From Mobula birostris (taxonomy: Eukaryota), in NCBI RefSeq assembly GCF_030028105.1, contig NC_092374.1:180189487-180253486 (forward strand): a stretch of DNA of 64,000 nt, written 5' to 3'. The translations under genes were made by a program, and so were the position numbers. Shown here piece by piece: positions 120-54,229 of the stretch (positions are counted from its first letter, which is position 1; each line of letters opens with the position of its first letter). The notes under the pieces were generated by a model. The model saw nothing but the letters and a program-made list of their open reading frames with translations, did no database searches and was not told the DNA's origin.

Positions 120-224
120 GTCCAAAGTCTCACCCACTACACTACTACATTTGAAGCACCGATCCTGTCTTTTAATCAGAGGGTATTTTGGGAAGTGTGA
201 TCACAACTCCTTAAGGTTTAACAA

Positions 225-1460: not shown

Positions 1461-1470
1461 TACAGCATGG

Positions 1471-2487: not shown

Positions 2488-2849
2488 ACAGAAACAGGCC
2501 ATCTCGTCCTTTTCTGTCTGTGCTGAACTCTTACCCTATCCTATTCCCACTGACCTGCACTCAGCCCATAACCCTCCATTCCTTTCCTATCCATATATCT
2601 ATCCAATTTAACTTTAAACAACATCCTCTGGCTTCTGACTAAATTTTGCTTTGTTGTATGCCCTCTCTTTTGCTTTTACAGTAGTTTTGACTTCCCTTGT
2701 CAGTCACAGTTGTACTATTTTGCCATTTGAGTGTTTCTTTGTTTTTTGAATACATGTATCTTGCACCTTAATGGCAGGAGGATTTTGGAGTTCGAGCTTA
2801 CAGAAAGAAATTTCTCAGTATAGTCTGGAAAAGATGGCTTTCCTTCATT

Positions 2850-3360: not shown

Positions 3361-4019
3361 ATAAAGAGGCAAAAGTGTTTTAACTTAGTTTGACGTTGTG
3401 TTCGGCACCAATATATCGGGTTAAAGGGCCTGTTCCTGTACTGCTTTGTTCTGTCCTCTACCCACCTACCCACTGAAATGACTGGGAAACCTGGGATCAC
3501 CTACACTCAGTGGAACCTGGTGTGTTGCTCTGCTGCTGCCCCGCAGGCCAACCCACTTCAAGGGTCTACGTGCTGCGCGTTCAGAGATGCTCTTTTGCGC
3601 ACCACTGTTGAAACGTTGATTATTTGAGCAACTGTTACCTCCCTGTCAACTTGAACCAGTCCGGCCATTCTCCTCTGACCTCTCTCATTAACACGGCATT
3701 TTCACCCACAGAACAGCTGCTCACTGGATGCTTTTTGTTTTTCGCACCATTCTCTGTAACTTCTGGAGACTGTTGCACATGAAAACCCCAGCAGATCAGC
3801 AGTTTCTGAGATACTCAGACCACCCCATCTGGCACCAACAATCATTTTCATGGTCAAAGTCGCTCAGATCACATTTCTTCCCCATTCTGGTGTTTGGTCT
3901 GAAAAGCAACTGAACCTGTTGACCATGTCTGCATGCTTTTATGCATCGAGGTGCTGCCACATGATTGACTAATTAGGTACTTGCATTAAAGAGCAGGCAT
4001 ACAGTGTGTACCTAATAAG

Positions 4020-5240
4020 ACCATAACATATAGGAGCAGAATTAGGCCATTCGGCCCATTGCATCTGCCACCATTCCATTATGGCTGATTAATTATCTCT
4101 CTCAACCCAGTTCTCCTGTCTTCTTCTGGTAATCTTTGGCACCCTGATTAATCAAGAACTTTCTGCCTCTGCCTTGAATATACCCAATGGCTTGGCCTAC
4201 ACAGCCGACTGTGGCAATGAATTCCATAGATTCCTGTGGCTAAAGAAATTTTTCCTCATCCCTCACTTTTGAGACTGTGCCCTCTGGCCCTTGACTCTCC
4301 CACAATAGGAAACATCCTCTCCACATCCACTGTATCCAGGTCTTTTTATATTTTATTTGTTTCAATTAGATCCCCACTCATTCTTCTAAATTACAGGCCC
4401 AGAACCATCAAATGCTTCTAATGAATTAACCTCCTCTCACCATCTCCAATACTTCAAGCGTAGTCTGACCAATGCCTCATAAAGCCACAACATTACATCC
4501 TTGCTTTTGTATGCTCATCCTCTCAAAATGAATGCTAATATTACACTTGCCCTCCTCACCACATTATCATGTTCTTCCCTCTGCTTACGTGTGACATAAG
4601 CAGCAATCGAGCTTGCCACCCTGGAGGTCCAGCTTTTCAGCTTTCCACCTACCTCCCTATATTCTCTCTTCAGGACTTCCTCCCTTTCCCCACTTAAGTT
4701 GTTGGTACCAATAGGTATCGTGACTTCCAGCTGTTCAATTTCCCCTTCAGAATACAACGGACCCTATCTGAGACATCTCTGATCACGGCATCTAGGAGGC
4801 AATATGCCGTCCAGGTGTCTCTTTCAGATCCACGAAATCTGCTTTCTGCTCCTCTAATTAAGGAATGTCCGATTACTACTACATTCCTCTTCTCCCGCCT
4901 TCCTCTCTAAGCTACAGTCATACTCAGTGCCAGAGACCTGGTCACTGCAGCTGTCCCTGGTGCGCCATCCAAAGCAGTACACTTATTAGAGAGGGGAATA
5001 GCACTGGCTGCCTATTCTCTCTCCCTCTCCTGACAGTCACCCAGGTACCAGTCTCCTGCAACTTAGGGGTGACTACCTCTCTGGAGCTCCTATCTATCAC
5101 CTCTGTACAAGGTGCAGGTCATCTATCTGCATCCCCAGTTTCTTAACATGGTCTCTAAGGAGAAGTGGCTCAATGTATTTTGTGTAGTTGTAGTTATCAG
5201 GGTGACAGGTAGTCTCTCAGAGTTCCCACATCTCAAATAA
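4020..5240 (-). mobile_element. CR1 LINE fragments (3' end plus ORF1/esterase-like part)
   Basis: CR1 tail 'ccataacatataggagcagaattaggccattcggccc'. ORF 4515-4757 (VTIPIGTNNL...EVLKREYREVGGKLKSWTSRV) resembles CR1 ORF1. Confidence 0.65.
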
Positions 5241-5459
5241 AGAACATGCCACTGCCTCAGCTCCATTCTCAGTGCACTAGATATGTATCATCAGAAGGGA
5301 AAAAAACACTGATCAGAAATTACTTAGAGCCTGCATCTGTGCTTGTCCAAATCTGTTCTCACCTCTGTCTGTTAAGCCAAAGCTGGATCACTCCAACACT
5401 GCCCCGCTCCAACAAGGTCCACTCTGCTTACACCTCCTTTCTATTTATTGGCCTTGCAC

Positions 5460-5650
5460 TGATCGTAGCCTGCCCAAAACAAAAGCCGAAAGCACCTGAG
5501 CTCTTCTTAAACCTCGTGCTGCATTATCATTGAAGACCTCTTGCGCTGATTGAAGCCTGCGAAAGAAAACCAAATTCTCCCAAGCTCCTTTTAAACCTCA
5601 CACTGTATCACCAACAAATGACCTCGCGCTCTGACTGCAGCCCAAAAAGC
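5460..5650. repeat. Degenerate ~86-bp tandem repeat (about 2.2 units)
   Basis: Units start tgatcgtagcc / tgattgaagcc / tgactgcagcc and share ttaaacctc and gacctc. Confidence 0.5.
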
Positions 5651-5717
5651 ACAGATTCAGCCTCAGCATGGCTTCAATTGGTAAAATGGGAATAAACATT
5701 GGAGATGGGGGACTCAC

Positions 5718-5975
5718 CACGTGAATGATTGGTTTGAGACATTATGAATGAAGCAAATTGTTTCAGTGTAATCTGCCGACTCTTGACAAATTCCAGCTTC
5801 CTCTTCCACCACTTGACCCCCTCACTCTTACTCATCCACTGGTCCTGGAGAACCAACGGCTGATCACTGTTGTAGGTCATGAACTTGACGCCGTCCACAT
5901 AGCCCACAGACAGAAACTGCGGGAAGTCGGGAATCTCAAATGTGGAGGTCACAAGAAATTGGAGGAGATGAGAGG
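5718..5975 (-). CDS. MHC class I heavy chain alpha1-domain exon (nonclassical)
   Basis: 258-nt phase 1-1 exon with acceptor ctctctttttcag| and donor |gtgagt. Encodes xSHLLQFLVTSTFEIPDFPQFLSVGYVDGVKFMTYNSDQPLVLQDQWMSKSEGVKWWKRKLEFVKSRQITLKQFASFIMSQTNHSR. Has the class I hallmarks P-x-F-x-x-VGYVD, W51, W60 and the N86 sequon (NHS). Confidence 0.95.
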
Positions 5976-6049
5976 CTGAAAAAGAGAGGGGATGAAATGC
6001 AGTCAGTTCACTGAATGAGATAACGTGTCAAGATGCAGACACCAAGTCA

Positions 6050-6880
6050 CAGTCTGTGACAGGTGAAGAGATGGGGGTTCAGCACCCCGTCCCTTCAACA
6101 GATGGGGGCAGGGTGTGAATGGCGGGGTGGGTAGTCTGTCTGGTGCTGTGTACCTTCCCCCTGACCTCAGTATGTGCCAAAGACACACACTTAAGGCTCC
6201 CAATCCCATCCCTAGTTTTCTTTCCTCACATTGAGCAGAGGCAGATCAGACATTCCCAGGAGTCAGTAGGGAATGCTGCATCTCCTCACTGAGTCTTGGA
6301 ACTTACCCTTGAACCTTTTCCTCTGCCCACTCGGAGATCTGATCTCCTGGACAGAGCTTGGGATGGGGTCTGGGGTAGGACTTGTGAATGAGGTGACTTG
6401 CCTCATCAGAGCGGACTCAGTGTGACCAGGGTCGCGGGATGAGGATGCATGTCTGGGATGGGTCGCTAATGCCAGTTCCCTGACCCTTCCCGTGGGTTCA
6501 GGGGATTCTGTGGTGACGGTGTTGGTGGTGTTTTCCAGCGCCAGGAGATGAGTAGCCCCACGTTTCAGAAGCACACACGAGGGCAGGGGTCACTGTTGTC
6601 CAGTCAACCACAAGTTTTATGCCACATCTGCAGCCTTGATCTTCACCCACCCTTCCCTTTTCCTGATTGACCAACTCTTGTTCCGCTCACAGAGGGTGAA
6701 GTACCATTCTCCACGTTTGCCGTCACCAAGTGCTGTTTTCTGGCACAAGGGAAGTAATCCATTTTCCAGGGTCTCCCCGTGAGCCCTTGGGGAGATCAGC
6801 TCTGGTGGTCAGTTCGTTGGAACGAGATGCAACATCAGAGAAAAGTGGGTCCTGAGGGAAATGACACTACACACCCTCAT
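6050..6880 (-). mobile_element. Old RTE-clade LINE 3' fragment in class I intron 1
   Basis: Frameshifted RTE motifs: cctgccctcgtgtgtgcttctgaaacgtgg (PALLYASETW-like) and RSPSGQRKRFK (RTE GGQRKRFKD-like), followed by an RTE-like C-terminus and 3' end. Confidence 0.75.
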
Positions 6881-6920
6881 CCAATACCGGACTTCACTGA
6901 GGTTAGTGCCGGTCCATGAT

Positions 6921-7260
6921 GAAACACACACACACACTCTCTCTCAGAGACACACACACACACACACACTCTCTCTCTCTCTCTCACACACACACTCTCT
7001 CTCTCTCAGACACTCTCTCTCTGACACACACACACAAACTCTCTCACACACACANNNNNNNNNNNNNNNNNNNNNNNNNNNNNNNNNNNNNNNNNNNNNN
7101 NNNNNNNNNNNNNNNNNNNNNNNNNNNNNNNNNNNNNNNNNNNNNNNNNNNNNNNNNNNNNNNNNNNNNNNNNNNNNNNNNNNNNNNNNNNNNNNNNNNN
7201 NNNNNNNNNNNNNNNNNNNNNNNNNNNNCACTCCCACACAGACACACGCACTCAGACACA
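6921..7260. repeat. (CA)n/(CT)n compound microsatellite spanning a gap (N 7055-7228)
   Basis: Direct reading. Confidence 0.95.
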
Positions 7261-7268
7261 AGCCTCAC

Positions 7269-7395
7269 CTTTTCTCCCGCTCCAGTCTCCAGCTGTATCT
7301 CGCCTCTCTCCCAGCCCCGTCACTGACTTTACACTTGTCTGAAAGCAGACATTCCACCTCTCCCGGAAGTTCCAGGAGTCTCGCGCATATCGATA
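7269..7395 (-). promoter_or_regulatory. Intronic CpG patch resembling a housekeeping promoter and non-coding first exon
   Basis: ETS/GABP CCGGAAGT at 7363-7370, TCTCGCG at 7379-7385, donor AAAG|gtgagg at 7269/7268, followed by a GT-rich tract. No productive ATG. Confidence 0.35.
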
Positions 7396-7439
7396 GTGGC
7401 TCCCTGACACCCGAAAATTATATACAATATCCCAGAAAT

Positions 7440-7863
7440 AGATTTTTTTGAGAGCGAGAGAATGTAAATGTCAGCCCAGATCAGAGGCGATTTGCATCGT
7501 CTCTGATCTGGGCCGATATTTACGTGCAGGGCGGCACCTAATCAATTAGCTTGTTTATTTCGGCTTTTTTCTTAAAGATGGGCTGGGTGCGTTCTGGCTA
7601 CCACTGCATGCTTCACGGCCCGGAGGTTTGGGACCACTGTTATGATTGACTTATCAATACATTCACGCGAGGAAAATATGTGCTGTGTGTTTAATATTAA
7701 ATTCGTTAGATTAAACCCCTTTAGGAACTAAATTGAGTGTATTAGCCACTTACTAGTGACTTACAGTTGACTTATCACCTCCGCCACCCCCGGGTCGGCC
7801 GGTCCGCGAGAATATTGCCAATATTAAACCGGTGCGCGGTGCAAAAAAGGTTGGGGACCCCTG
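7440..7863. mobile_element. Nested hAT MITE fragments
   Basis: TIR-like ends 'ggtttgggaccactg' (~7629) and 'ggttggggacccctg' (7863). The interior 'aatattgccaatattaaaccgg' is shared with 26821-27026. Confidence 0.7.
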
Positions 7864-8230
7864 ATTTAAACTAGCTGGCTAGCTGCCACGGAGCTACGCT
7901 ATTGATGTCCTACGTGATGAGGCCAAACTCCCTGTAGACTAGCTTAAAGTTGTAATAGAATAAACATAATATAAGTACATATCTTAATGTCACACATACA
8001 CAACTTGGTTTACAGATTAGACAAAATCACTAAACAAAGTATTACATACATCCTTGGAGGTCGAGGTCGACGGGGGGGGGGGGGGTGCAGATATGGGGTT
8101 GCGGACGGCGGAGTGCTACCTCCCTGAAATGGGTTTTTGCAGGGTGGGATGTCTGTGAAAGGAAACTCCTTCCCCAGGCTCGACCCCCCCCCCCCCCACC
8201 ACACTGACCCTTCCCCACACCATCACTTAC

Positions 8231-8294
8231 GTGCGGAGGCCTCTCCACGCTGGAAGACGAACACTATCAACACCGCTCTCAAGGACGCTTCCAT
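8231..8294 (-). CDS. MHC class I leader (signal peptide) exon
   Basis: ATG at 8294 encodes MEASLRAVLIVFVFQRGEASA plus 1 nt, then donor |gtaagt. Phase 1 joins in frame to the alpha1 exon. Normal n/h/c regions with A-x-A. Confidence 0.9.
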
Positions 8295-8321
8295 TTCTCG
8301 GAACTGAAAAAAATTCACGGC

Positions 8322-8417
8322 AGAAGCGAAACTAACCAGCATATAACCATATAAGGTTTTGGTCCAATCAGAAACATCAGTAGACGGCGTGTCACCAGTC
8401 TCCGGGTAGAAGAGCAC
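8322..8417 (-). promoter_or_regulatory. MHC class I promoter: X1-X2 box, Y box, TATA-like element, ISRE
   Basis: CTTCTACCCGGAGACTGGTGACACG resembles the HLA class I X1X2 as I recall it (CTTCTTCCAGGATACTCGTGACGCG). Y box CTGATTGG at 8364-8371, TTATAT near 8341-8353, ISRE-like AGTTTCGCTTCT at 8322-8333. Confidence 0.8.
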
Positions 8418-8439
8418 TGAGGACGCGGTGAGCTCAAAA

Positions 8440-9970
8440 CTTCAAAATAAGTTCATTACCAAAGCACGTTGTGTCATCATATACTACTCTAAGATTCAGT
8501 TTCTTGCGAGTAGAACAAATAAACATAGAAAACCTAGAGCTCAATACAGGCTCTTCGGCTCACAATGCTGTGCCGAACACGTACTTTAGAAGTTACCTCG
8601 GGTTACCCATAGCCCTCTATTTTTTTTAAGCTCCACGTACCTTGTACTGTTAAGAATTACAATCGAATCATTGAAAATATTACACACAAAGACTGACCAA
8701 CAACCAATGTGCAAAAGATGGCAAACTGTGCAAATACAGTACAAAAATAATATAAAATACAAACGTTTGTAATATCAAGGATATAAGTTGACTTGTAGAG
8801 TCCTTGAAAGTGAGCCCACAGGTTAGGGAATCAGTTCAGTGCAGAAGTGAGTGAGGTTATCCACACTGGATCAGGAGCCTGATTGTTGAAGAGTAGTAAC
8901 TATTCCTGAACCTGACGGTGTGGGACCTAAGATATCTGTACCTCCTTCCCAATGGCATCAGTGAGAATAGAGCTTGGCCCGGACTGTGGGGTTCCTAGAT
9001 GGCAGATGCTGCTTTCTTGTGGCAGTGTTCCTTGTAAATGTGCTCAGTGGTGGGAAGGGCTTTCCTCTGGACTGTATCCACTACTGTTCAGAGGCTTTTC
9101 CATTCTTAGGCATTGGAGTTCCTGTACTGCACTGTGAGGCAGTCAGGGTACCCTCCACAGTGCATCCACAAAGGCTGGTCAACGTTCTAGATGACATGCT
9201 GACTCTGCACAAACTTCCATGAAAGTAGAAGTACTGCCCGCGTCTTTGTGAATGGGCAAAAGATTTGAGCCTGGAATTTGTTTGCTAATGAGATTGAAAG
9301 ACACAGTCAGAGACCTGATTTGTGCTTCCTCTGTTGTGTTGTCATAATCAAAATCAAGTTTATTGCCATATACACAAATACAAGTACACGTACGCACGTG
9401 TGCAATGAAAATTTTACTTGCAACTGGTGACACTGCTTTGGAGCACCTGGACAACTGTAATACCCATGTCAGGCCAATTACAGAATGGCATTCAACACCA
9501 CCATCCCCTCTGTACTTACAACCAGGCTTCAGAACCTGGGCTTCTGAACCTCTGCAATTGAATCCTTGATTTCCTCACTGGGAGACCACAGTCAGTCCAG
9601 ATTGGAAATAACATGTCCTCACTGACAGTCAACAGAGGCATACCTCCAGTATGGGGGCTTAGTCCGCTGCTCTACGCTCTCTGCACACTGACTGTGAGGC
9701 TAAGCACAGCTCAAATGTCACCGATGATGCCACTGTTGGTAGAATCAATGAGCGAGGTAGATTGCATAGTTGAATTGTGTGGCAACAAGCTTGCACACAT
9801 CAGTACGATCAAGGAACTGAAATTTGCCTTCAAGAGGGGAAGTCAGAACACACACCAGTGCCCATTGAAGTCTTAAATGCAATCTTAAAGATAGCAAGCC
9901 AATGGCTATACTTCATTAAGAATTTGAGGAGATTCAATATGTCACTAAAATACTTGCATTTATGCAAGTT
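8440..9970. mobile_element. Rex1/Babar-type LINE fragments, both orientations
   Basis: Remnants of GxPQGxxLSPLLY-like and FYRCTxESIL-like segments plus the family 3' tails. Confidence 0.65.
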
Positions 9971-39944: not shown

Positions 39945-40830
39945 CAGTGGTACGCAAAAGTTTGGGCACCCCTGATCAAAATTTCTGTTACTGTGAATAG
40001 CTAAGAGAGTAAAAGATGAACTGATTTCCAAAAGGCATAAAGTTAAAGCTGACACACTTCTTTAATATTTTAAGCAAGAAAACTTTTTTATTTCCACCTT
40101 TTACAGTTTCAAAATAACAAAAAAGGAAAAGGGCCCGAAGCAAAAGTTTGGGCACCCTGCATGGTAGTACTTAGTAACACCCCCTTTGGCAAGTATCACA
40201 GTTTGTAAGCGCTTTTTGTAGCCAGCTAAGAGTCTTTCAATTCTTGTTTGGGGGATTTTCACCCATTCTTCCTTGCAAAAGGCTTCTAGTTCTGAGAGAT
40301 TCTTGGGCTGTCTTGCATGCACAGCTCTTTTGAGGTCTATCCACAGATTCTCGATGATGTTTAGGTAGGAGGACTGTGAGGGCCATGGCAAAACCTTCAG
40401 CTTGCTCCTCTTGAGGTAGTCCATTGTGGATTTTGAGGTGTGTTTAGCTTCATTATACTGTTGTAGAAGCCATCCTCTTTTCATCTTCTGCTTTTTTATA
40501 CACGGTGTAATGTTCACTTCCAGAATTTGCAGGTATGTAATTGAATTCATTCTTCCCTCTATCAGTGAAATGTTCCCTGTGCCACTGGCTGCAACACAAG
40601 CCCAAAGCATGATTGATCCACCCCTGTGCTTAACAGCTGGAGAGGGGTTCTTTTCATGAAATTCTGCACCCTTTTTTCTCCAAACATACCTTTGCTCATT
40701 GCAGCCAAAAAGTTCTATTCAAAAGGTTCAAAGGAACATCTAAACAAGTCTGATGCATTTTGGAAACAAGTCCTGTGGACTGATGAAGTTAAAATAGAAC
40801 TTTTTAGCTGCAATGAGCAAAGGTATGTTT
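39945..40830 (-). mobile_element. Tc1-like transposon, truncated (IR/DR type)
   Basis: TA|CAGTGG end. The inner DR caaaagtttgggcacc is repeated at ~39955 and ~40141. ORF 40101-40610 contains WPSQSSYLNIIENLW (Tc1 DDE C-terminus). Confidence 0.9.
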
Positions 40831-41320: not shown

Positions 41321-42335
41321 AATGTTCAGGGGGTATTGTATGTCTGTGGAAAAGGAAAATGTGGCATCAATGGATACCATAGAGGTGTTTCAGGACCGTT
41401 GGGCACTGCAGGGGTTAAATCCCATCCTTGTAGAGGATGGGAATGTATTAGTTTGGTCTGTGCTAGTCATGATTTGTTTGGTTTTTGTTTGTAATATGAT
41501 TGTACAAACTGTAATGGTTTAAATTTATAATAAATGTATTTTTGTAAAAAAAGGGGACTGTTGCTTTTCCTTCCAAATTCCACAATGCATTTCGTGGTCT
41601 TGCTAATGTTAAACACAAGGTTGTTGTTTTGACACCACTCAACTAGCCAATCTATCTCACTCCTTGTCACAATCTATGATTCTGCCAACAACACTTGTAC
41701 CATTGGTAAGTTTATAGATGGTGTTTAAGCTGTGCCTAGTCGTGAATATAGAGAGAACAGCGCAGCAGTCGAAGGACACATCCACCTCAAAATCCTAATG
41801 AAGTCCAGCCAGTGGCATGCCTTTGTCGTAACTGCACCGACGTGTGGGCCAGGGCCCAGGATAGATTCTCTAAGACATCGATGCCCAGGAACTGGAATTG
41901 CACTCAGCCTGTATTTTGGTTCTCTGCACATCTCCGTCACCTCTCCCCAGACTCTCGCCCACATCCACACACTCAGGGCAATTCACGGCAGACAATGATC
42001 CCACTAACCCTCAGGGATGTGGGAGGAGCATTGTTCTGCACTCTGTCACTGCTTTTCCAATGTACAACCTCAGTGTAGTTACGTATGGAATGATCTGAAT
42101 GGTATGCAAACACAGGTTTTTCACTGTACGTGTGGGAATATTAAACCAATCAGCAATTGGACCAGGTGGGGAATGTTAATGACATCAGGATGGAGCTGGA
42201 GACCAACAGCTGCTCCCTTCAGTCCACATCGGATCTCGAGGGAAGCACAGAGCATTCCTCTGATTGGGTTCACTCATTTATCAAACACAGTATCAAAGAG
42301 ATTAGGGCTAAGGCTTCATCTTCAGAGCATTCTCC

Positions 42336-42642
42336 GTGTTCTTCTACCTGGAGACTGGTTATACACTTCTTTTGATGATGTTTCTGATTGGGGTGCAAGC
42401 CCCCTCATCGGTTACAGTACCCGGTTAATTTCACTTCCTCGGTGGATCCAGGTTCTGGAGATGGAGGAGGTACGCTCTCTAGCAGTGGGGTCGACAATGT
42501 CGGGGGGGGGGGTGGTGGTTCTCTGTTAGCAGGTGACGGTGACAGATGGGATGAGGCACTCCGCTAGCTGGTGACGGTGACAGATGGGGTGAAGCTCTGA
42601 GCCTCAGTGTGTGTTGGGGAAAGGGGTGGTTTCCCTCAGACA
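42336..42642 (+). pseudogene. Orphan paralogous MHC class I promoter, decayed leader and intron-1 start
   Basis: 25/29 identity to the X box at 8389-8417 (opposite strand), a 16/16 tgatgtttctgattgg Y-box block and a 13/16 ISRE block. ATG at 42461 with an in-frame TAG at 42527-42529. 42615-42642 resembles 8150-8176. No class I domain exon follows. Confidence 0.75.
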
Positions 42643-42869
42643 GTGATTTGGGGAGGGGGGTGTTGGGTGGGTCAGTGTCAAGGTGAGTAAGGTGGAGTGA
42701 CAGGGCTCAGGAATGGGGCCAGGGAGATCAAGATGGAGCTGGAGACCAGGGCTTGGGTGTGGGTGTTAGTGCAAGAGGATGTGGGGTCGGTTTAGTGAAT
42801 CAGGGCTCCTGTCTAAAGTACAGGACTATAAATCTATATCTCCTTCCGGTAAAAAAAATCCCTCTCATC

Positions 42870-43200
42870 CCCTCTTTTTCTATTCCCCATTCTGGCCTCT
42901 TACCACTTCTCACCTGCCTATCACTTCCCCCTCAGTTCTCTCCTACTTCCCTTCCTCCTATGATCCACCCTCCTCTCCTCTCCTATCAGATTTCTTCCTC
43001 TCCAGCCCATTACTTTTCCCTCCCACATGGATTCACCTATCACCTTCTAGCTCTCCTCCTTTCCCTCCCGCCACTATCTTATTCTGTCGTCTTCCCCCTT
43101 CCTTTCCAGTCCTGATGAAGGGTCTCGGCCTGAAATGTCGACTGTTTATTCATCTCCAGAGGTCTGCTGAGTTCCTCCGGCATTCTGTGTGTGTTGTCTT
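42870..43200 (+). mobile_element. Penelope-like terminal repeat
   Basis: 'ctttccagtcctgatgaagggtctcggcc...gagttcctccggcattctgtgtgtgttg'. Confidence 0.8.
43107..43144 (+). ncRNA. Minimal type I hammerhead ribozyme motif (Penelope)
   Basis: CAGTC-CTGATGA-AGGGTCTCGGCCT-GAAA-T-GTC-GACTG. Confidence 0.6.
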
Positions 43201-43622
43201 TGGGACCTCCAGACGCAATTAGTCTGCCTTCACTCAATCTTGCCTCGTTCTGATGAAGGGTTATTGTCCTGAACTATGATCCCATTCCCCTCTGCACAGA
43301 TACTGCCTGATCTAGGAGTATCCACTATGTTTTATCTCGCTGTCCCTGACTTGTGGTGGGTGGATCTAATGGGCTTCCCTAGGAGTGGGGCGAGGAGGCT
43401 GCTGAAGTTTACTGTGGAGAGCTGGTGATGGGAGGGAAGGGATTGCTGGGGGAAGTGGAGGAGGAGAGAAAGGGTCTGAGGGAGGGGAGGGGATTGAGGC
43501 GGTGGGCAGGAACTGTGAGGGGAAAGGGTGTAGTTGACACTGGGCCTGATCGTCTGCTTAACTCTGACATGACCAGTTTCTGTCCCTCGGTGATCTGAGA
43601 GGGCAAGAAACTCTCAGAGGAG

Positions 43623-44183
43623 GATGATTGCATTTCTTACATTAATGGCTAGAAGATCCATTTTACTGAATTGGAAAGAGATCAATCCTCCCACCACATT
43701 TCATTGGTTCTCTCAAACTATGTTGTGTTTAAATTTAGAAAAAATTAGAAGTATCATTTATGATCCTTCTATTAAATTTGAAAAGGCGGAAGCCATTTAT
43801 TCAACACTTCCATATGATGTAATTTGGCCTTTTCCAAAGCTATTCTATTTCTTTTAAAAATATACAGACAGGAGTGGAGTCAATGACATTAATGGTTCTT
43901 TTTGATGTTATACAACAGCCCATGTCTTTTCCTTTTCCTTAGTTGAGCATTGTTAGATTAGTTTATTTTTGGGGGTATTTTTATTTTTTTCCTTCTTCAT
44001 GCTATTTCTGTTTTTTTTTGTTTATTATATTTGTATTTTGTATGATTTTGGGAGGTTTTAATACCTGTGTGCCAAGTGAGTTTATATTTATATATGTTAA
44101 TTATTAACAATGTAATCCTAATAACTTTGTATTAATACTATGTTATGTTTAACATTTTGATATTAATAAAAGGATTGAAAAAG
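43623..44183 (+). mobile_element. 5'-truncated L1 with an 18-bp TSD
   Basis: TSD AAGAAACTCTCAGAGGAG at 43605-43622 and 44184-44201. IAFLTLMARRSILLNWK...LNLEKIR is an ORF2 C-terminus. Confidence 0.9.
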
Positions 44184-44974
44184 AAGAAACTCTCAGAGGA
44201 GAGAACCGAGAGTCTCTGGGAATCATTCAGATCATCATTCCTTGACAACCCCTCCAGATATGTCAGTTCCATCAGCTCTCACAAACTGCAGCTGCTGTAC
44301 CTACCTGCCCTGCCATTGTTGGCTTAACCGTTGTGGATATTTGAGCTGTGTTTAACTCTCCATATTCAGTTGAAGTTTCTAATTCAACAAATCATGCCAC
44401 CAGTCCACATGTTAATCCTCCCTTCATGCTGTACTGAACCAAATGGAATTAGTCCTCTCTCTATTTTCTCTCTCTCTGTCTGTCTCCACTCTCTCCCTTC
44501 CCCACCTCCACAGGTTTTGTTTTCTTACCTTTCCCAATTCTGATGGAGGGTCATTCACTTGAAACATTAACCATTTCCTGCCCCAGTGCCTGCCACAGAC
44601 AATGTACTGATCCCTCAGAGTGCCATTCATAAACAAATTGAAATTTTGTAACTATTTCCCAATGATTCAATGTGTACAACTCAATAAAGTTTTGGTATCA
44701 ATGCTGTTGTTTCTTGGTGCTGTGTCGTTGATTGGACTGTTCATAGTTTGAAACCTTTACCAAAGAAACATCTAAGGCCCACAATTCTCCATTGAAAGAA
44801 TTCACCTGCACTGACAGAGAGGGAAGACCTTGAAAGTGGGGCAATGGAAGTTGGGTGTGGATGCTAGGGCAAGAGGATGTGGGGAGGGGGGATTGCTCTG
44901 AGAGCCAGCAGAGACTTGGTAGGCTGAGTGGCCTTATCTATGTCATGGGGAACTTGTGGACAAAGTGATACAGC

Positions 44975-45200
44975 AAGTCGATCCGCCACCTCACAGTTCC
45001 AGAGACAGTTTGATCCCGAGCTCTGGTGCTGTCTGTGTGGACTTTACATTGTCCTTGACACTGCCTGGGGGCTGTGGGTTCCTCCCACGTCCCAAAGACA
45101 ATGCAGGTTGGTGGGTTACTCGACTGCTCTAAATTGCCCCCTAGTGTGCGGGTGAGGGGTGGAATCTAGTGGGGAGATGATGGGAATGTGGGGAGGGTGG
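44975..45200 (+). mobile_element. V-SINE/HE1-like SINE
   Basis: 'ggttcctcccacgtcccaaagac...taaattgcccctagtgtg'. Confidence 0.65.
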
Positions 45201-45685
45201 CTTACAGGGAAATATTGAAATGAATGGGATTGCTCAGAGCAAGGTTGGCATCAATGGATCAAATGGCCTACCTCTGTGCCAAGAGGAAATGTGGGAAGCC
45301 AGGTTCGCGGCGTGGAACAGACCGAGTCGGGGGTGTGCTGTGAGCTGGTTTAGCCCAGAGACAGGGCCTCGGTGTATCGTAGATGGGGTAAGGGGTAGTG
45401 GGTGTGTCTGTGTGCCCTGTTCCAGGAATCCTCACTCACACAGCACACCCCCTCTCCTGTAGCAACAGCAGGGAGAGGGCACAAGGCAGGTTAGGGGAGG
45501 TGACTGGAGGTCTTCCTCACCTTCTCTGGAGGTCTCACAGCAACTGTACACTGACATCTGCCTCCCTCCAACAGCGCCCATCAACCCGGGGATCTTTCTG
45601 TGCCTAAAATGTCACACCGTAGCTAGTGACTGTATGGCTGATGCTGGTCAGGGGTGTGCAGAGGAACCTGGAGTAAAAACAAGTA

Positions 45686-46400
45686 AGAGAGGAGGAGAGT
45701 GTGGTGAAGAGGGGTGAAGGGGGGGAGAGGGGATAGAGAGTGGGGAGAGGGCTTGGGGAGCAGGGAGAAAGGTTAAGGAGAAGAGGGAGAGAGAGGGGGA
45801 GAAGGTGGAGGGGAGAGAGGGATGAAGGAGGAAAGAGGGGATAGAGAGAGGGAGATACAAAGAGAGAGGAGGAGAGAGGTGAAGGGTGAAGAGAGAGTAA
45901 GAGGGGAAGTGGGGAGAGAGGTTGGATGAGTGGGGGAGAAAGAAGAGGGGAGGGAGAGAGAGAGGAGAAGGGGAGAGGGGAGAGGGGGAGGGGGAGAGGG
46001 GGAGGGGAGCAATGAGGTGGGAGAGGAGGGGGAGGTGGGGTAGGGGAAAGGGGGAGGGGAGGGGAGGGGGAGAAAAAGACAGAGAGAGAATCTGTAGAAG
46101 TTGTGTGTGAGAGGGAGGATTGTGAAAGCAGGGGTAGAAATATGTGGAAGATGGAGATAGTGTGTGTGAGAGTTTGTGAGTGAAGGAGGGTCAGAGAGTA
46201 TTACAGAGAAAGTGAGGTATCTCATGTGAAAGAGAAAGAGATAGAGCGAGGGAGTGTGAGAAAGAGAGAGAAGAAGGGTATCAGAGGGAAAGAGAGAAAG
46301 ACTGTTTCAGATGGAGACAGTGTGTGTCAGTGAGAATGTGTGAGGGAGTGAGAGTGATGGGGTGTGAGGGTGATAGATTGAGGTATCACAAGTGAGAGTC
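45686..46400. repeat. Polypurine (GA/G-rich) low-complexity tract
   Basis: Direct reading. Many GGG(G) runs, so G4/H-DNA potential. Confidence 0.9.
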
Positions 46401-46924
46401 TGTGCATGAGATCCCTCTGAATCTAATCTTGAGTGAGTGCAGGTGGAACGGACCCAGTCTCTCCCCATACGTCAGCCTTCTCAAGGGTCAGTCATGGTGA
46501 ACAATTCCTGCACTCTCTCCATAGCAAAAACATCTTTCCTTGGATAAGGAGACCTGGACTGCACACACAGATTGCAATGGGGTTTCCCCAGGGCCCTGTA
46601 CAGCTGCAGTAAGCATCCCGGCTCCTGGCTGCAAATCCTCATCTAAAGAAACAATACATACCATTTCCTTCTGTAACAACCTGCTACCTCTGAACACATC
46701 CACCCAGTGACCCAGGTCCCACCACGCCCAGATCCCATTCCACCTGCCCTCCTTCCATCATCAATCAGCTAATATTTGCCTTTCTGCCTTAATAAAACCA
46801 AAGTAGTAAACCTCACATTTGCATCTGCCTTGTTTTTGTTCACATACCGTAAATTACACAGGAACCTTTTTACATAATTCTCACAGTTCACCGTTTCACC
46901 TGTGCATGTCAATGTTTCCTCTAA

Positions 46925-46944
46925 GGTGGGGTGGGTGGGTGGGT

Positions 46945-47007
<63 letters not shown>

Positions 47008-47374
47008 CGCAAACTTTTCCTACTAACACACAAAAGAATTTAAACTGCACACAAAATGTTGTCACTCTCTACCTCGTTGGCATATTAAGCATATTTCACG
47101 ATTGTACACAATCACATTTCTTTTTCTGATTTCTGCTGCGGATGGTATTAACAAGGTGGAGTTTGCGATGATTTGTCTGCAGATTTTAGAACTGGCTTAT
47201 TTATACTGTTTTTATTGGGAGAAAAAAATTATTCAGTGCACATGTGTCGTTGTCACTGGGCAAAAAAATTGTACAGCACAAGATTTTTGCGCACACTGGT
47301 CATTACAAATTAGAGGGAATGTTGGTGTGTGTGCGTGTGCACTGGTATGTGTTGGTGTGATTATGCTGGCATTG

Positions 47375-47460
<86 letters not shown>
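46925..47460. repeat. Two (GT)n microsatellites (~46947-47000 and ~47376-47460)
   Basis: Direct reading. Confidence 0.95.
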
Positions 47461-47465
<5 letters not shown>

Positions 47466-47796
47466 CCGTTTGTCTATGGATACCTAGCCAACAACACTAC
47501 CTATGCCAGGCCACCCTTTATCGATTATAGCCTGGTGTTCAACAAACATGAGAAAATCTGTAGATCCTGGAAATCCAAAGCAACACACACAAAATGATGG
47601 AGGAACTCAGCAGGCCAGGCGGCATCTATGGAAAAGAGTGAATAGTCAATGTCTTGGGCCGAGACCCTTTAGCAGGACTGGAAAAGAAGTGGGAAGAAGT
47701 CAGCTTAAGAAAGTGGGGGGAGGAAAGGAAGAAGTACAAAGTGATAGGTGATAGGTGAAACTGAGAGAGGGGAAGGGGTGAAAGACTAAGGAGCTG

Positions 47797-48545
47797 GTGG
47801 TAGACCTGAGGAGAGCTAAGATACCGGTGACCCCTGTTTCCATCCAGAAGGTCAGTGTGGACATCGTGGAGGATTACAAATACCTGGGGATAATAATTGG
47901 CAATAAACTGGACTGGTCAAAGAACACTGAGGCTGTCTACAAGAAGGGTCAGAGCCGTCTCTATTTCCTGAGGAAACTGAGGTCCTTTAACATCTGCCGG
48001 ACGATGCTGAGGATGTTCTACGAGTCTGTGGTGGCCAGTGCGATCATGTTTGCTGTTGTGTGCTGGGGCAGCAGGCTGAGGGTGGCAGACACCAACAGAA
48101 TCAACAAACTCATTCCTAAGGCCAGTGATGTTGTGGGGATGGAACTGGACTCCCTGACGGTGGTGTCTGAAAAGAGGATGCTGTCTAAGTTGCATGCCAT
48201 CTTGGTCAATGTCTCCCATCCACTACATAATGTACTGGGTGGGCACAGGAGTACATTCATCCAGAGACTCATTCCACCGAGATGCAACACAGAGCGTCAT
48301 AGGAAGTCATTCCTACCTGTGGCCATCAAACTTTACAACTCCTCCCTTGGAGGGTCAGACACCCTGAGCCAATAGGCTGGTCATGGACTTATTTCATAAT
48401 TTACTGGCATAATTTACATATTACTATTTAACTATTTATGGTTCTATTACTATTTATTATTTATAGTGCAACTGTAACGAAAACCAATTTCCCCCGGGAT
48501 CAATAAAGTATGACTATGACTATGACTATGACTATGACTACAACT
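47797..48545 (+). mobile_element. Rex1/Babar 3' end with a (TATGAC)n tail, inserted in a Penelope fragment
   Basis: YKYLG..NKLDWSKNT..KKGQSRLYFLRKLRSF. Penelope sequence flanks it on both sides (47545-47795 and 48545-48900). Confidence 0.85.
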
Positions 48546-49379
48546 AAAGAGCTGGGAAGCCAATTGGTGAAAGAGATAAAGAAAAGGGGGAATTTGATAG
48601 GCAAGTGTAGAAGATAGGGAAGGAAGGGAAGGGTGAGGAACACCACAGGGAGGTGATAGGCAGGTAAGGACTTAAGGTGAGACAGGCAAACAGGAATGGA
48701 AAATGGTGAAGGGGGGGATTCATGCCATCAGGTTGGAGGCTACCCAGATGGAATATAAGGAGCTGCTCCTCCAATCTGAGTGTTGCCTGATTGAGGAGAC
48801 CATGGACTGACATGTTGGAATGGAAACTGTAACTAGAATTGTAATGGGTGGCCACCGGGAAATCGTGTTCAACACAATCATCCATTCAGGACCGATAACC
48901 AAGTTTCAAAACCTGGCCCTCTGCAAATCGATTCTCAGCTTCCTCGATGGGAGACCACAGTTTATTACAGATCGGTAACATCATCTCATCCTCGCTGACA
49001 ATCAATGCTGGCACAGCACAAGGAAGCATACTTAGCCCGCTGCTCTACTCTCTCTTCACTCTTGACTTTGTGGCTCGGCACAGCTCAAATGGCAACTGGA
49101 AATTTGCTGATAACAGCGCTGTTGTCAGAATCTCAGATGGTGATGAAGCAGCAAATGGGGAACAAGATGCTGTAGATCAGCAAGTTGAGTGGTGTTGCAA
49201 CTCAGTGTCAGCAAGACCAAATAATTGTGAACTTCAGGAAGGGGAAGTTGGGAGAACAGTCAGCAGTCCTCACTCAGAGGAAAGGATGGGAGAGCACTTC
49301 CAAGTTCAGGGTGTCAATATCTCATAGGATCTATCCTGGGTTCAGCACATTGTCAGATTCACGAAGACACAACAGCTGC

Positions 49380-50480
49380 TATACTTATACTTTATACTTC
49401 ATTGTCGCCCAACAATTTGATACATACAATCATCACAGCAATATTTGTTTCAGCGCTTCCTGCTCCCTGGATTACAAATCAATAGTAAATATTAAAAATT
49501 TAAATTATAAATCATAAATAGAAAATAGAAAAATGGAAAGTAAGGTAGTGCAAAAAAACTGAGAGGCAGGTCCAGATATTTGGAGGGTACGGCCCAGATC
49601 CGGGTCAGGATCTGTTCAGCAGTCTTATCACAGTTGGAAGGAAGCTGTTCCCAAATCTGGCCGTACGAGTCTTCAAGCTCCTGAACCTTCTCCCAGAGGG
49701 AAGAGGGACGAAAAGTGTGTTGGCTGGGTGGGTCGTGCCCTTGATTATCCTGGCAGCGCTGCTCCGACAGCGTGCGGTGTAAAGTGAGTCCAAGGACGGA
49801 AGATTGGTTTGTGTGATTTGCTGCATCGTGTTCACGATCTTTTGCAGCTTCTTCCAGTCTTGAATGGGACAACTTCCATACCAGGTTATGATGCACCGTA
49901 GAAGAATGCTTTCTACAGTGCATCTATAAAAATTAGCGAGGGTTTTAGGGGACAGGCCAAACTTCTTTAGTTTTCTCAGGAAGTAAACGCGCTGGTGGGC
50001 CTTCTTGGCAGTGGACTCTACTTGGTTGGACCAAGTCAGGCCATTTGTGACATTGACCCCGAGGAACTTAAAGCTTTTGACCTGTTCCACTTGCGCACCA
50101 CCGATGTAAATTGGGTCGTGTGGTCTGCTACTCCTTCTGAAGTCAACAACCAATTCCTTCGTCTTGCTGACGTTGAGGGATAGGTTATTGTCTTCGCACC
50201 ATGCCACCAGGTTCTTAATTTCCTCTCTGTACTCAAACTCATCATTATCCGAGATACGGCCTACAATTGTTGTGTCATCAGCAAACTTATATATTGAGTT
50301 TGATGGAAACTTAGCTACCCAATCATGGGTGTACAGTGAGTACAGCAGGGGCTGAGCCTTGTAGGGCACCGGTGCTCAGAGTGGTGGTAAAGGAGAGCTT
50401 GTCCCCTGTTTTTACAGCCTGGATCCTGTCTGTGAGGAAGTTGAAGATCCAGCTGCAGATCTGAGTGCTAAGGCCCAGGT
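49380..50480 (-). mobile_element. Rex1/Babar RT 3' fragment (254-aa open stretch at 49605-50369)
   Basis: [32 protein letters not shown]. Confidence 0.9.
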
Positions 50481-51279
50481 TCCGGAGCTTAGGAAGCAGT
50501 TTATTATGAGTTTGAGGAGATTTGGTATGTTGCCAAAGACAAATTTTCTATAGATGTACCGTGGAAAGAATTTTTAATAGCTGCATCACAGCCTAGTGTT
50601 GAGGCCTCTGTGCACAGGATCTCAAGAAGCTGCGGAGGGTTACTGACTCCCTCCGGCAGCTCCATCACACGCACGACCTTCTCCATCATCAAGGACTCTT
50701 CTAGAGGTCGTATCTCAAGAAGGCTTCGTCCATCACTAAGGGCTCTCCCCATCTGTCAGTGCCCTCGTCTCATTACTATTATCAGTACAGGAGCCTGAAG
50801 CCCCAAACACAACAGCTTCTTCCCCTCCTCCATCAGATTTCTGAATGGTCCATGAGCCCTACCTCACTATTCCTTTCCTTCCTTTATTTACTTCTGTGAT
50901 TTACGGATTCTTGTCTTTGCGCTGTACTGCTCCTGTAAAACTACAAATTTCATGTGTTAATGATAAAGCACTGATTCTGCGTATGTGCCTTGACCTGTCG
51001 CTTAGTGTGTGTTGGTGTCTCTCAGTGTGTGTACTGGTATATGTCAGTGCGTGTGTTTTTGTTGGTGTATGTTAGTGTGTGCATTGTGTGGTGTCTGTGC
51101 ATGTGTTCATGTGTTGGCTTCTGTCAGAGCGTGTGTGTGTGTGTGTGTGTCTATCTGTCGGTCTGTTCGCCTGTCAGTCTATTTCGATGTGTCAGTGTGA
51201 CAGGGACAGCGTGTCTGTGTCTCGGTGTGTTAGTATGTGTGACAGTGCGTGTGTACTGGGTTATGGTCAGGGAGCATGT

Positions 51280-52060
51280 CCTTGTAACTCGGGCCCGGCT
51301 GTCCGCCGCGAAGCGCTGCGGCCACTGCGCTCCGCCCCTCCGGGAGCCGATCTTCGCCACTCCCACCTCCCTCCTCGTCGCCCCAGCACCGTTTCCTCCT
51401 CAGTGTGTGAGAGAGGACGCGGGTAGCTTCTGTGCAGCGCCTGCCCGACAGCTCTTCTGCAGTGCTGTTGAAAGAGAGAGAGAGAGCAGGAGTCGGGGAC
51501 CTCTGCAGGGACTGAGTTTGCTGACAGTTTTCAGGAGGTTATCTCACTCTCTCTGCAACTCTCTGATCAGATGAGAGCCGAACTAGACAGGAGTGTGCTG
51601 ACGCCACTTTGAAGAGCGGGGCAGGGAGTCCCGGGCTGATGTCCCGCCGGAGGAAGACAGTGGCTGCTGTTACCATGAAGGCTCCGGGACCCGGGCAGGG
51701 TTAGCCGGACTCATCAGCCGGCTCGGGCAGAGGAGGAGAGGTTGCCAGACCCCGGAGGAGTCTGGGTAGGGTCCTGCTGCCCCGGGACACCTCATGCTGG
51801 CTCGAACGGTCCGTCACCTCCTGGACGGGGTGAAGCTAGAGCTGTCGGGGGACCCCGACGTGGTGCTGAGCGGCTACAGGGCGAGGGACCCGGACCAGGA
51901 GACACCGCTGGTAAGTTTCGGGCACCTGCACATTTTCCGCGGACAGAGCCGTGGATGGGAGGATGGTGGTGGGTGGGGGGGCGCGGGTGAGTAGAGACAT
52001 GGGTCTCTCTCGGCCCATCCACATCCTGTTCAGAAGAGCATAGCTCGTCTCCGCCCCGCG
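51280..52060 (+). promoter_or_regulatory. RGL2: CpG island, promoter and 5' leader of RGL2
   Basis: Sharp rise in CpG and GC content, a GC box CCGCCCC at 51332-51338, and it precedes the RGL2-like ATG. Confidence 0.8.
51794..51910 (+). CDS. RGL2: Ral guanine nucleotide dissociation stimulator-like 2, first coding exon
   Basis: MLARTVRHLLDGVKLELSGDPDVVLSGYRARDPDQETPL|gtaagt (phase 0). Matches the human RGL2 N-terminus as I recall it (MLPRPLRLLLD...VVLSSFRSRDP) and RalGDS (WDAVRLEV...VVL...DPD). RGL2 is an MHC-region gene. Confidence 0.8.
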
Positions 52061-52100
52061 GTCTGCAATGTTCCACAGAACCCGGAATCCACCACCCCCA

Positions 52101-52134
52101 CCCCAACCCCAACCCCAACCCCAACCCCAACCCC
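52101..52134. repeat. (CCCCAA)5 CCCC repeat
   Basis: Direct reading. Confidence 0.9.
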
Positions 52135-54229
52135 GGATCATCGGTGTCCCCTCCCTCAGGAACAGAGGGTCACTGTCTTTCGAGATACCTTACAACGGTC
52201 CCACGGACCCCCCCCCCCCCACACACACACACACACAGGCACACAACGGCTCACCCTGTCACTCTGTGACACTCGGATTCTCTGGCTGTTAGTCTCTCTC
52301 GCTGTCACTCTCACTGTCTCTCATACCCATTATTTCCAACACCCTTTATTGTACAACGGTGCCAAGACCCTTTATTGTACAACGGTGCCTCCACATCCAG
52401 ACGAGATGAGTGCAGTTCATCCCTCCCCCGGTGCTGCCACTTCCACATCTGTTACCCCACCCGCACGTAAGTACCTCCCTAGAACTCCTCCACAAAACTG
52501 TCTTGTGCTGTGGAACGTGTTCCCCAGAACCCTGTGCTGACTGACCTGGTTAGGCTTCGCCGTTATATTAAAGCTCCCCACCCTAGTGTTCAGTTCCCTC
52601 ATAGTCTCCCTTTATATGGCACCACCTTGTAACCCTGAGGTAACTGCCCTCAGGTCGTGGCCTCAATTTTCCAGCGTGTTGCTGGGGAGGTGAGAGAGGG
52701 TGAGGAGAGATTTCAAAGGGGCTCAAATTCCTCTTATTGACGGCATGCAGGGGGGAAAGTTGTTGCCACTGACTCAGTGGGTGGATCTTGCTGGGCTGCG
52801 GAGACACTGGATCAATTGCAAGACCTTTTACTGAGGCAGCTATTGCTGTTCTGGATGCCTGAAGCAAGGCCCAGTAGGAACTCTTGAAAAATGGAACTGG
52901 GTTATGTGAAGCACAAGGGCAGCATCTAAAAGGACAAATTGTTCTGTAGACTCAACCAGCTCCATGATAGGTGCTAGCCTCTCCACCATCAAGGGCATCT
53001 TCAAAAGGCAATTGCTCTAAAGGCAGTGGAGGACCCCCACTCCCAGGATATGCCCTCTTCTCATTACTACCATCAGGAAGGTGGTGCACACTCAACTCCT
53101 GTCCAGATTTCAGAACCCAGACGGTGCACCCACGAACATTTGTCCGTTATGTGCCCTGTCATATGATGTAGGTGATCATGGTCTTTCCATGATGATGATT
53201 GTTTGGCAATGTTTTCTACTTAAGTGGTTTCCCATTGCCAGCTGCTGGTACGCCCATCCACCACCCGCTGCCGTGGCTTCACGTGACCCTGATCAAAATG
53301 GGGGGGGGGGGCTAAACAGGTGCTACACCTTGCTCAAGGTGACCCGCAGGCCAGCAGAGGGAAGGAGAGCTTTGTATCTCCTTTGATGGAAACGTATCTC
53401 CACCCCACCACTTGAACATTATCTTACTATTTTTGCTCCCTTTCTGCACTATGTATTTAATCTTAATCCACAAAATAACAAATTTCATGACATATATCAC
53501 TGATGATGAACCTGATTCTGAACAAGAGATAGCTGGGAACCTATTGAAACCTAAAAGTCTAGGGCTGGAAAGACTCAGCAGGTCAAGCAGTATCTGTGGA
53601 GAGAGAAACGGAGCTAACATTTCAGGTCAAATGTGGAAAGACTCTGTGGAGAGGGGAACAGAGTGGATCTTCCATATCCCAGGAAAGTGAAAAAGCAAGT
53701 TATTTTTCAAGAACGGAGGGTAGGACTAAGGGAACATCTCTGATAGGGTCAGATTGGCATTGGAATCTCATACTGGTGCTTTGTTTGGGAAAAGTCTTGC
53801 TAACACCAGGGCAGAAGGGCAGAGTCTGACTGTGTTGACAGGGGGTGAAGTAATCGGGCTGTTGATTTAAGGAGTCAGAACCAACACAGTGGCTTCTGGG
53901 CCCATCGTTCATAGTGGCCAACCCCTTTGTCCTCATAGGAGACTATTGCTGCATGCAGCCCATAGATAAGGGGACCACGTTCGTATGGGGCTGATCTCAC
54001 TAACACCGAGGTCCCAGCTCCCCTGTGACGAAAGCCAACTTGTCCTTTCTTAATCGTGCACAGTACCTCATATACTTAGCCTCTCCCACAGTGTAGTTGG
54101 CCATTTGGCCTGTTGAGACTATGCCAGCCCTCAGCGTGATCCCTTCAGCTGCTGTGTTCTGTTCTGTATGAGGGAAATCAGGACCTTCTCAGCACCACCA
54201 TCGAGACGTCACACTGTTTAAATAATATA

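Follow-up and report, generated by a model that had tools for sequence, protein, structure and literature searches.

Upstream of the RGL-like gene in the manta ray Mobula birostris lies a stretch of MHC class I promoter sequence that has no class I gene behind it. This raises the question of whether the stretch is what remains of a gene that once stood there, a fragment brought in from elsewhere, or a promoter that has been taken over by its new neighbour. We addressed this question in a window of 64,000 nucleotides of transposon-rich vertebrate DNA (assembly GCF_030028105.1, contig NC_092374.1, positions 180,189,487 to 180,253,486), and all positions in the ray refer to this window. A first-pass annotation, made from the letters of the sequence, had described an inverted duplicate of the promoter of a class I gene located at 8.3 kb and had proposed that a dead class I gene donated an immune-responsive promoter or enhancer to RGL2, a Ral-GEF gene, giving rise to an isoform with the N-terminus MEE.

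The orphan block and its paralogue at 8.3 kb

In blastn searches, positions 42322-42447 of the plus strand aligned to the class I promoter at 8431-8313 on the minus strand over 126 nt with 69.8% identity (E values of 1.5e-11 to 2e-10). The local alignment score of the orphan against the gene promoter amounted to 40, as compared to 8.4 +/- 1.4 obtained with dinucleotide shuffles (z = 22.5), so that neither chance nor convergence can account for the similarity. The orphan is the sole match to the 8.3-kb promoter within the 64-kb window, and the X1 18-mer and the Y 15-mer occur at two sites each, i.e. in the orphan and in the 8.3-kb promoter. A recount from the sequence confirmed the earlier description of a plus-strand copy of this promoter, with 25/29 identical positions in the X block, 16/16 in the Y block and 13/16 in the ISRE block. 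The additional similarity that had been claimed for intron 1 did not hold up, since local comparison with the class I gene yielded z = -0.4 and anchored global comparison P = 0.8-0.9. Similarity of the leader to that of the gene was not significant when taken alone (P = 0.12), and the stretch of 20-odd bases between the end of the core and the ATG showed marginal similarity (P = 0.04). Upstream flank, leader and intron of the orphan compared with the gene at noise level, restricting statistically supported homology to the 126-nt core at 42322-42447. The upstream sequence at 42080-42321 was also considered as a second, degenerate SXY copy, a candidate that we rejected as no significant similarity was found.

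The paralogue of the orphan is the promoter block of the class I gene at 8.3 kb (8313-8431, minus strand), which carries S, X1, X2 and Y boxes and an ISRE-like element. The SXY region of mouse H2-K, as reconstructed from primer sequences given by Ludigs et al. 2015 (PMC4374748), was compared with all tiles of the window on both strands. The 8.3-kb promoter agreed with it in 24/30 positions across S, X1 and X2, reaching a score of 18 versus 7.0 +/- 1.3 for all tiles (z about 8.5). As this was the top match to H2-K in the window, we regard the 8.3-kb block as a true class I SXY module. A repeat adjoins the gene promoter from about position 8437 (8437-8523 matches 35564-35477), about 6 nt away from the limit of homology at 8431. 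Downstream of the promoter, the minus strand encodes a leader exon (8231-8294; 64 nt, phase 1, donor gtaagt) and an alpha-1 exon (5716-5973), which was recognized by Pfam as MHC_I with 38 bits at a cut-off of 28.3 and whose top match among solved structures is 6lup, designated 'MHC class I protein'. No alpha-2 or alpha-3 exons of this gene were found in the window, as none of 33 minus-strand pieces of 1-5716 contained a class I domain according to Pfam. A search for homologous proteins with the alpha-1 ORF yielded no candidates. We also looked for a second, hidden class I body in the window, but the alpha-1 ORF had no tblastn match elsewhere in it and this candidate was dismissed.

In the orphan block, which lies on the plus strand as do all of its motifs, the S and X1 boxes occupy positions 42333-42359, within which TTCTACCTGGAGACTGGT (42342-42359) is identical to the gene in 17/18 positions. 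The S-X1 stretch agrees with that of mouse H2-K in 15/20 positions, i.e. the class I form of S and X1 is present. The Y-box block TGATGTTTCTGATTGG (42376-42391) is identical to the gene throughout and retains the inverted CCAAT (CTGATTGG) that defines a Y box. At the position of the X2 box (42358-42364) the orphan reads GTTATAC, where the gene has GTGACAC and mouse H2-K has TTGACGC, and the CRE-like core (TGACGC/TGACAC) is gone. Mutation of X2 from GTGACAC to GTTATAC had already been noted and stands as a reading of the sequence, the alignment with the mouse SXY region ending ahead of the orphan X2. The observation that the X-Y spacing is 2 nt longer in the orphan than in the gene was likewise correct: by manual count, the distance from X2 to ATTGG is 21 nt in the orphan, 19 nt in its paralogue and 18 nt in H2-K. 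Spacing within the SXY module is reported to matter for recruitment of NLRC5 (Ludigs et al. 2015, PMC4374748). The orphan resembles the NLRC5-controlled SXY module of H2-K (PMC4374748) in how S, X1 and Y are arranged and in their sequence, but differs from it in that X2 is gone. A further difference concerns the ISRE-like element, which lies downstream of Y in both ray promoters but upstream of S in H2-K, according to the primers in PMC4374748. In the orphan, the ISRE-like block extends from 42423 to 42438 and includes TTTCACTTCC (GGAAGTGAAA on the opposite strand), for which the positions 42429-42438 had been given correctly.

The leader vestige and the region up to the RGL-like gene

Downstream of the core, an ATG is present in the homologous place at 42461, which had been located correctly, and opens a leader-exon vestige of 72 nt (42461-42532, plus strand) that ends in phase 0 ahead of a donor-like gtgacg, as compared to the 64 nt and phase 1 of the gene leader. 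The vestige contains a run of 11 G (42502-42512) and an in-frame TAG at 42527-42529, one codon ahead of the donor-like site, in agreement with the stop that had been reported for it. The leader peptide (MEEVRSLAVGSTMSGGG...) is devoid of a hydrophobic core. Two tandem units of 38 nt, which are 79% identical (42510-42585, plus strand), span the TAG as well as the donor-like site. Altogether, donor-like sites had been listed after positions 42469, 42532 and 42682, coordinates that proved right. The last of these has the consensus form AAG/GTGAGT (42680-42688, plus strand). The motif AGGTRAGT is found three times in the window, where 5.6 occurrences are expected by chance, and the probability of encountering one in the correct orientation no further than 230 nt from the ATG is about 1%, the donor being located 220 nt downstream of it. 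The site at 42682 is mildly unusual in this respect, but was chosen post hoc. Block and vestige reside in a non-repetitive island of ~960 nt (41898-42858), which according to repeat matches is bordered by a LINE/reverse-transcriptase fragment on the left (41564-41897) and a SINE-like repeat on the right (42859-43225).

Behind the vestige, Pfam detected neither MHC_I nor C1-set domains in 56 plus-strand ORF pieces of 42687-51766, the only genuine Pfam matches being reverse-transcriptase remnants. In addition, tblastn searches with all ORF pieces from around the class I gene returned nothing but repeats. Both searches bear out the earlier statement that no class I domain exon lies in the 9.3 kb separating the orphan from exon 1 of the RGL-like gene. 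The orphan does not sit directly upstream of a class I coding gene; it shares homology with a part of such a gene and has lost the coding body, as is characteristic of a class I fragment.

The first coding exon of the RGL-like gene (51794-51910, plus strand) starts with an ATG at 51794, is followed by gtaagt and, as had been stated, ends in phase 0; its 5' region is rich in CpG. We presume this gene to be RGL2 by resemblance to the human N-terminus, and a gene named 'RGL-like' is also found at the matching position in the sawfish. Exon 1 shares 73% of its nucleotides and 76% of the encoded amino acids with chiPu_0017020 of the bamboo shark, a hypothetical protein and the one relative obtained when protein representatives were searched with this exon. 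A search for homologous proteins with the exon-1 ORF gave no candidates, the bamboo shark protein found only itself when used as query, and a protein atlas search with exon 1 returned chance-level matches only. Exact look-up of four ORFs of the window showed that none is on record. At the bamboo shark locus, no SXY-like match was obtained outside a 4.4-kb N gap located directly upstream of exon 1. The bamboo shark is too distant for alignment of noncoding sequence.

Possible origins: gene loss in place, insertion or misassembly

Elasmobranch MHC-Ib genes are clustered within the MHC (Verissimo et al. 2023, PMC10751288). The gene table of this study includes the contig NC_067438.1, which we assume to be that of the sawfish, since the sawfish is the only ray genome in PMC10751288. 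On this contig, an RGL-like gene is encoded on the minus strand (12,131,430-12,244,443), and a locus termed 'uncharacterized' (12,252,782-12,304,448), which lies upstream and is oriented alike, has an MHC-Ib gene annotated within it (LOC127585854; 12,287,889-12,292,528), while MHC-Ib genes of the opposite orientation follow from 12,319,324 (PMC10751288). Thus, the window and the sawfish table have a gene order in common, consisting of a divergent class I gene, an MHC-Ib gene or the orphan in the same orientation as the RGL-like gene, and the RGL-like gene itself. The MHC-Ib gene annotated in the sawfish occupies the position and orientation that match those of the orphan, which at the level of gene order supports an origin of the orphan in situ.

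We conclude that the orphan is probably the decaying 5' stub of a lost nonclassical MHC class I (MHC-Ib) gene, which, judged from the synteny with the sawfish, would have been lost in situ and whose remains would be without function at present. Accordingly, the premise of the first-pass annotation, i.e. that the block is a remnant of a dead class I gene, is upheld by the homology, by the lack of class I exons behind it and by the sawfish MHC-Ib gene in the matching place. The former gene would have been located at the border of the MHC-Ib cluster, beside the RGL-like gene and in head-to-head arrangement with the class I gene that survives at 8.3 kb. Its body, comprising alpha-1 to alpha-3, may have been lost through deletion or transposon turnover, which would have left behind the S-X1-(X2)-Y-ISRE block, the ATG at the homologous position and a badly damaged leader.

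One feature of the surroundings fits an inserted fragment better than a relic in situ. The orphan is flanked by a 25-nt direct repeat, whose left (42181-42205) and right (42724-42748) copies on the plus strand are identical in 23/25 positions and have no further counterpart in the window. Block, leader vestige and donor-like sites all lie between them. Outside of the repeats the sequences of the two sides are unrelated to each other, and hence do not reflect a simple tandem duplication. It is conceivable that the ~520-nt segment in between (42206-42723) was copied from another class I gene and inserted with duplication of the target, in which case a class I gene would never have existed at this site. 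Divergence amounts to 8% between the two repeat copies and to 27% between the core and the 8.3-kb promoter (Fisher P = 0.07). Provided that the repeats are as old as the insertion, the segment must have come from a different class I gene that is more diverged. In its extent, encompassing promoter, leader and the start of intron 1, the segment is also reminiscent of other class I 5' fragments such as HCP5 (PMC6562477). However, 25 nt would be unusually long for a target duplication, and neither a poly-A tail nor a terminal inverted repeat nor a transposon end is present beside the segment. Moreover, a promoter is normally outside of any retro-copied transcript, and from the layout in the sawfish a class I gene is expected at precisely this position and in this orientation. 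We therefore consider an insertion quite unlikely. The right copy of the repeat was also evaluated as a second leader exon (MELETRAWVWVLV...) and discarded, as it has no similarity to either leader (P = 0.8).

Could the stub simply reflect an error in the assembly? Assembly of MHC class I clusters is difficult, and an intact class I gene could have been collapsed or misjoined at this position. In a weaker form of this explanation, only the stop in the leader would be due to an erroneous homopolymer length, as a one-base error in the 11-G run would shift the frame and phase downstream. Yet, no run of N interrupts the sequence from 7228 to 64000, and the intervening 9 kb consist of ordinary, diverged transposon sequence. 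The leader is devoid of a hydrophobic core in the other frame as well, and loss of X2 and of CpG is independent of the homopolymer. An artefact appears highly improbable.

Probable decay of the stub versus its possible reuse as a promoter

Recognition of the block after loss of the gene may be accounted for by its partner. Core identity of 73% corresponds to a Jukes-Cantor distance of 0.33, and doubling this distance predicts an identity of about 56% for sequence that is free to change on both lineages, which in the presence of indels would be undetectable. The block would be recognizable mainly through constraint acting on the promoter of the surviving gene: changes in the core would have occurred mostly on the orphan lineage, while the unconstrained flanks would have diverged on both lineages, beyond detection. 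Constraint on the gene promoter alone would therefore suffice to explain the pattern of survival, without any selection on the orphan. Along the core, matching positions are not significantly concentrated at the motifs (P = 0.14 for the longest run and P = 0.30 in a runs test), and selective conservation of motifs over spacers is not demonstrable with this single pair of orphan and paralogue. The CpG content (observed/expected) of the orphan segment is 0.35 and equals the background of the window, in comparison to 1.09 for promoter plus leader of the gene and 0.61-0.63 for the 5' region of the RGL-like gene; the shortfall relative to the value of the gene is significant (Poisson P = 1.3e-6). 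Destruction of X2, the additional 2 nt of spacing, a leader with a stop, the wrong phase and no hydrophobic core, and CpG at background level all make the sequence point to decay. Some observations run counter to a decaying stub: X1 (17/18) and Y (16/16) are nearly intact and a match to GGAANNGAAA is present, so residual factor binding or activity may be possible. The consensus donor 220 nt downstream of the ATG is another such observation.

GGAANNGAAA is the consensus of the Ets-IRF composite element (EICE), which is bound by PU.1 together with IRF4 or IRF8 (PMC3121741, PMC4334403). The orphan carries a perfect match on the minus strand at 42429-42438, which represents a putative site. As compared to the ISRE-like block of the paralogue there are three substitutions, only one of which affects a fixed position of the 10-mer, namely the final T to C that completes the GGAA core. 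This 10-mer, which has 8 fixed bases, occurs nine times in the window, where 3.3 occurrences are expected. Furthermore, the promoter of the extant gene has its own match, TTTCAGTTCC (GGAACTGAAA), at 8309-8300, five bases 5' of the ATG and in the same orientation as that of the orphan. Given the nine occurrences in the window and the one in the gene's own promoter, the "perfect EICE" weighs little, and the match in the orphan need be no more than a product of chance or inheritance. The proximal match of the gene is absent from the orphan, which has gained the other one 20 nt upstream. Loss and gain may reflect turnover of sites while the gene was still alive, and the change is not evidence of a new function.

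These data bear on the idea that the stub has been reused, the S-X1-Y boxes and the IRF/Ets-type sites still recruiting RFX, NF-Y and IRF, and that it would serve as the promoter of a noncoding RNA that extends into the downstream transposon sequence, in the manner of HCP5, or would provide the RGL-like gene with an immune-responsive enhancer or an alternative first exon. X1 and Y being almost intact and GGAAGTGAAA being present speak for such a role, and replacement of the gene's GGAACTGAAA (8300-8309) by another match 20 nt upstream could also be turnover in an active promoter. The consensus donor at 42682 would provide a splice site, and ATG GAG GAG followed by gt matches exon 1 of the RGL-like gene in ending in phase 0. 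In the sawfish, the 'uncharacterized' locus runs from the MHC-Ib genes towards the RGL-like gene in the same orientation. Finally, there is an expressed precedent in HCP5 (PMC6562477). On the other hand, X2 is destroyed and the spacing is altered, CpG is at background in contrast to the active-looking promoter of the gene, and the motifs show no excess of conservation over the spacers. In addition, GGAANNGAAA is present nine times in the window, the RGL-like gene owns a CpG-rich 5' region, and a match in phase is expected by chance in one third of cases. We regard reuse of the stub as unlikely. Donation of a promoter to RGL2, as originally proposed, is unsupported, and the sequence leans against it in view of the loss of X2, CpG at background, matches that are not clustered, a common EICE and a phase agreement of one in three; the specific MEE-RGL2 protein isoform has at most a very low probability.

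Truncated class I fragments and pseudogenes occur in the class I duplication blocks of the mammalian MHC. Human HCP5 (P5-1) consists of an HLA class I promoter with the leader and part of intron 1, joined to ERV16 in antisense orientation, and is expressed (PMC6562477). Similar to HCP5, the ray orphan combines a class I promoter with sequence at the place of exon 1 and of the beginning of intron 1, lacks class I domains, has transposon sequence downstream and is located inside the MHC. However, HCP5 has retained high similarity to the promoters of HLA class I genes and is documented as a transcript under interferon regulation (PMC6562477), whereas the orphan is recognizably homologous over only 126 nt at 70%, has lost X2 and shows background CpG. 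Retention of the stub as a promoter or enhancer that responds to interferon and NF-Y/RFX, and that would drive either a noncoding RNA or an alternative first exon belonging to the Ral-GEF gene, is very unlikely; if true, it would constitute an independent counterpart of HCP5 in the ray lineage and tie MHC-type regulation to Ral signalling. The orphan would be notable only if active in RNA or chromatin. It resembles mammalian class I fragments such as HLA-S (PMC6562477) in being a partial and presumably functionless gene that would result from duplication or deletion in a cluster. Unlike most mammalian fragments, which keep exon sequence, it retains the regulatory block and a vestige of the leader only, and its host is a ray.

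Fragments of class I genes are of a known kind in MHC clusters, and the orphan is best taken as a commonplace outcome of gene turnover in such a cluster. The paralogous promoter at 8.3 kb demonstrates that the S-X1-X2-Y arrangement of H2-K is recognizable in a ray, and the orphan itself provides a natural X2 knockout for work on the SXY module of rays. As the probable stub of a lost MHC-Ib gene, it would mark the loss of a class I gene beside the RGL-like gene in this ray lineage, and would serve as a breakpoint marker for the change of the MHC-Ib cluster between sawfish and manta.

Direct repeats around the orphan promoter segment

The orphan block (42322–42447, plus strand), a class I promoter remnant with no class I exons behind it, lies between the two copies of a 25-nt direct repeat, which also enclose the vestige of a leader exon (42461–42532, plus strand) and the donor-like sites following positions 42469, 42532 and 42682. 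The repeat copies (42181–42205 and 42724–42748) are identical at 23 of 25 positions and have no other counterparts in the window, and beyond both of them the sequence is unrelated. Judging from the sequence, the repeats may represent a target-site-like duplication around an inserted segment of 518 nt.

Of the eight matches to CTGATTGG (Y-box/CCAAT) in the window, three cluster in a 250-nt stretch that includes part of the orphan block (Poisson P ~5e-4). Two of these, at 42146–42153 (minus strand) and 42260–42267 (plus strand), are located upstream of the orphan SXY block, i.e. the S, X and Y boxes of class I promoters, and the third one is found at 42384–42391 (plus strand). No additional similarity to the SXY block was detectable at the two upstream matches.

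Two 38-nt units are arranged in tandem at 42510–42585 (79% identical) and correspond to a duplication of the end of the leader vestige, in which the TAG and the donor-like site gtgacgg are contained. The vestige carries a homopolymer of 11 G residues (42502–42512), and frame and splice phase 3' of this run depend on its exact length.

Neighbouring DNA and the RGL-like gene

At a distance of 1.6 kb, the island that harbors the orphan block is preceded by a remnant of a Tc1/mariner-type transposase (Pfam DDE_3, 42 bits), present on the minus strand at 40104–40718. Downstream, the 5' portion of the RGL-like gene (51000–52200; first coding exon 51794–51910, plus strand) resembles a CpG-island promoter, with a GC content of 60% and a CpG o/e of 0.63. 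Intron 1 of this gene contains a (CCCCAA)n run at ~52090–52135.

In sawfish, a 52-kb locus annotated as 'uncharacterized' (NC_067438.1, 12,252,782–12,304,448) runs from the MHC-Ib genes towards the RGL-like gene in shared orientation and ends 8 kb before the latter (supplement table, PMC10751288). This locus might represent a transcript under the control of a class I promoter. The orthologous locus of bamboo shark (BEZZ01001198.1) is uninformative on the presence of a class I stub, because a 4.4-kb N gap (5496–9943 of the retrieved locus) immediately adjoins RGL exon 1 upstream.

The promoter of the extant class I gene

For the extant class I gene (minus strand), neither an alpha-2 nor an alpha-3 exon was found within the 5.7 kb (1–5716) downstream of its alpha-1 exon (5716–5973); the remainder of this gene is outside the window or missing. 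N runs are present at 1735–1970 and 7055–7228. Repeat elements occupy 8437–9238, starting ~6 nt upstream of its S box, and any upstream enhancer A or ISRE is thus displaced.

When the S-X1-X2 sequence of mouse H2-K, as given by published primers, is compared with the window, its best match overall is the extant ray class I promoter, with 24 of 30 positions identical (8382–8411, minus strand). In mouse H2-K an ISRE-like element precedes S, whereas in both ray promoters, extant and orphan, it follows Y. The extant promoter also possesses its own perfect GGAANNGAAA match at 8300–8309, reading TTTCAGTTCC on the minus strand, which is located 5 bases before the ATG and downstream of the ISRE-like AGTTTCGCTTCT (8333–8322). 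By its motif content, the promoter of this family may comprise two IRF-type sites between Y box and ATG.
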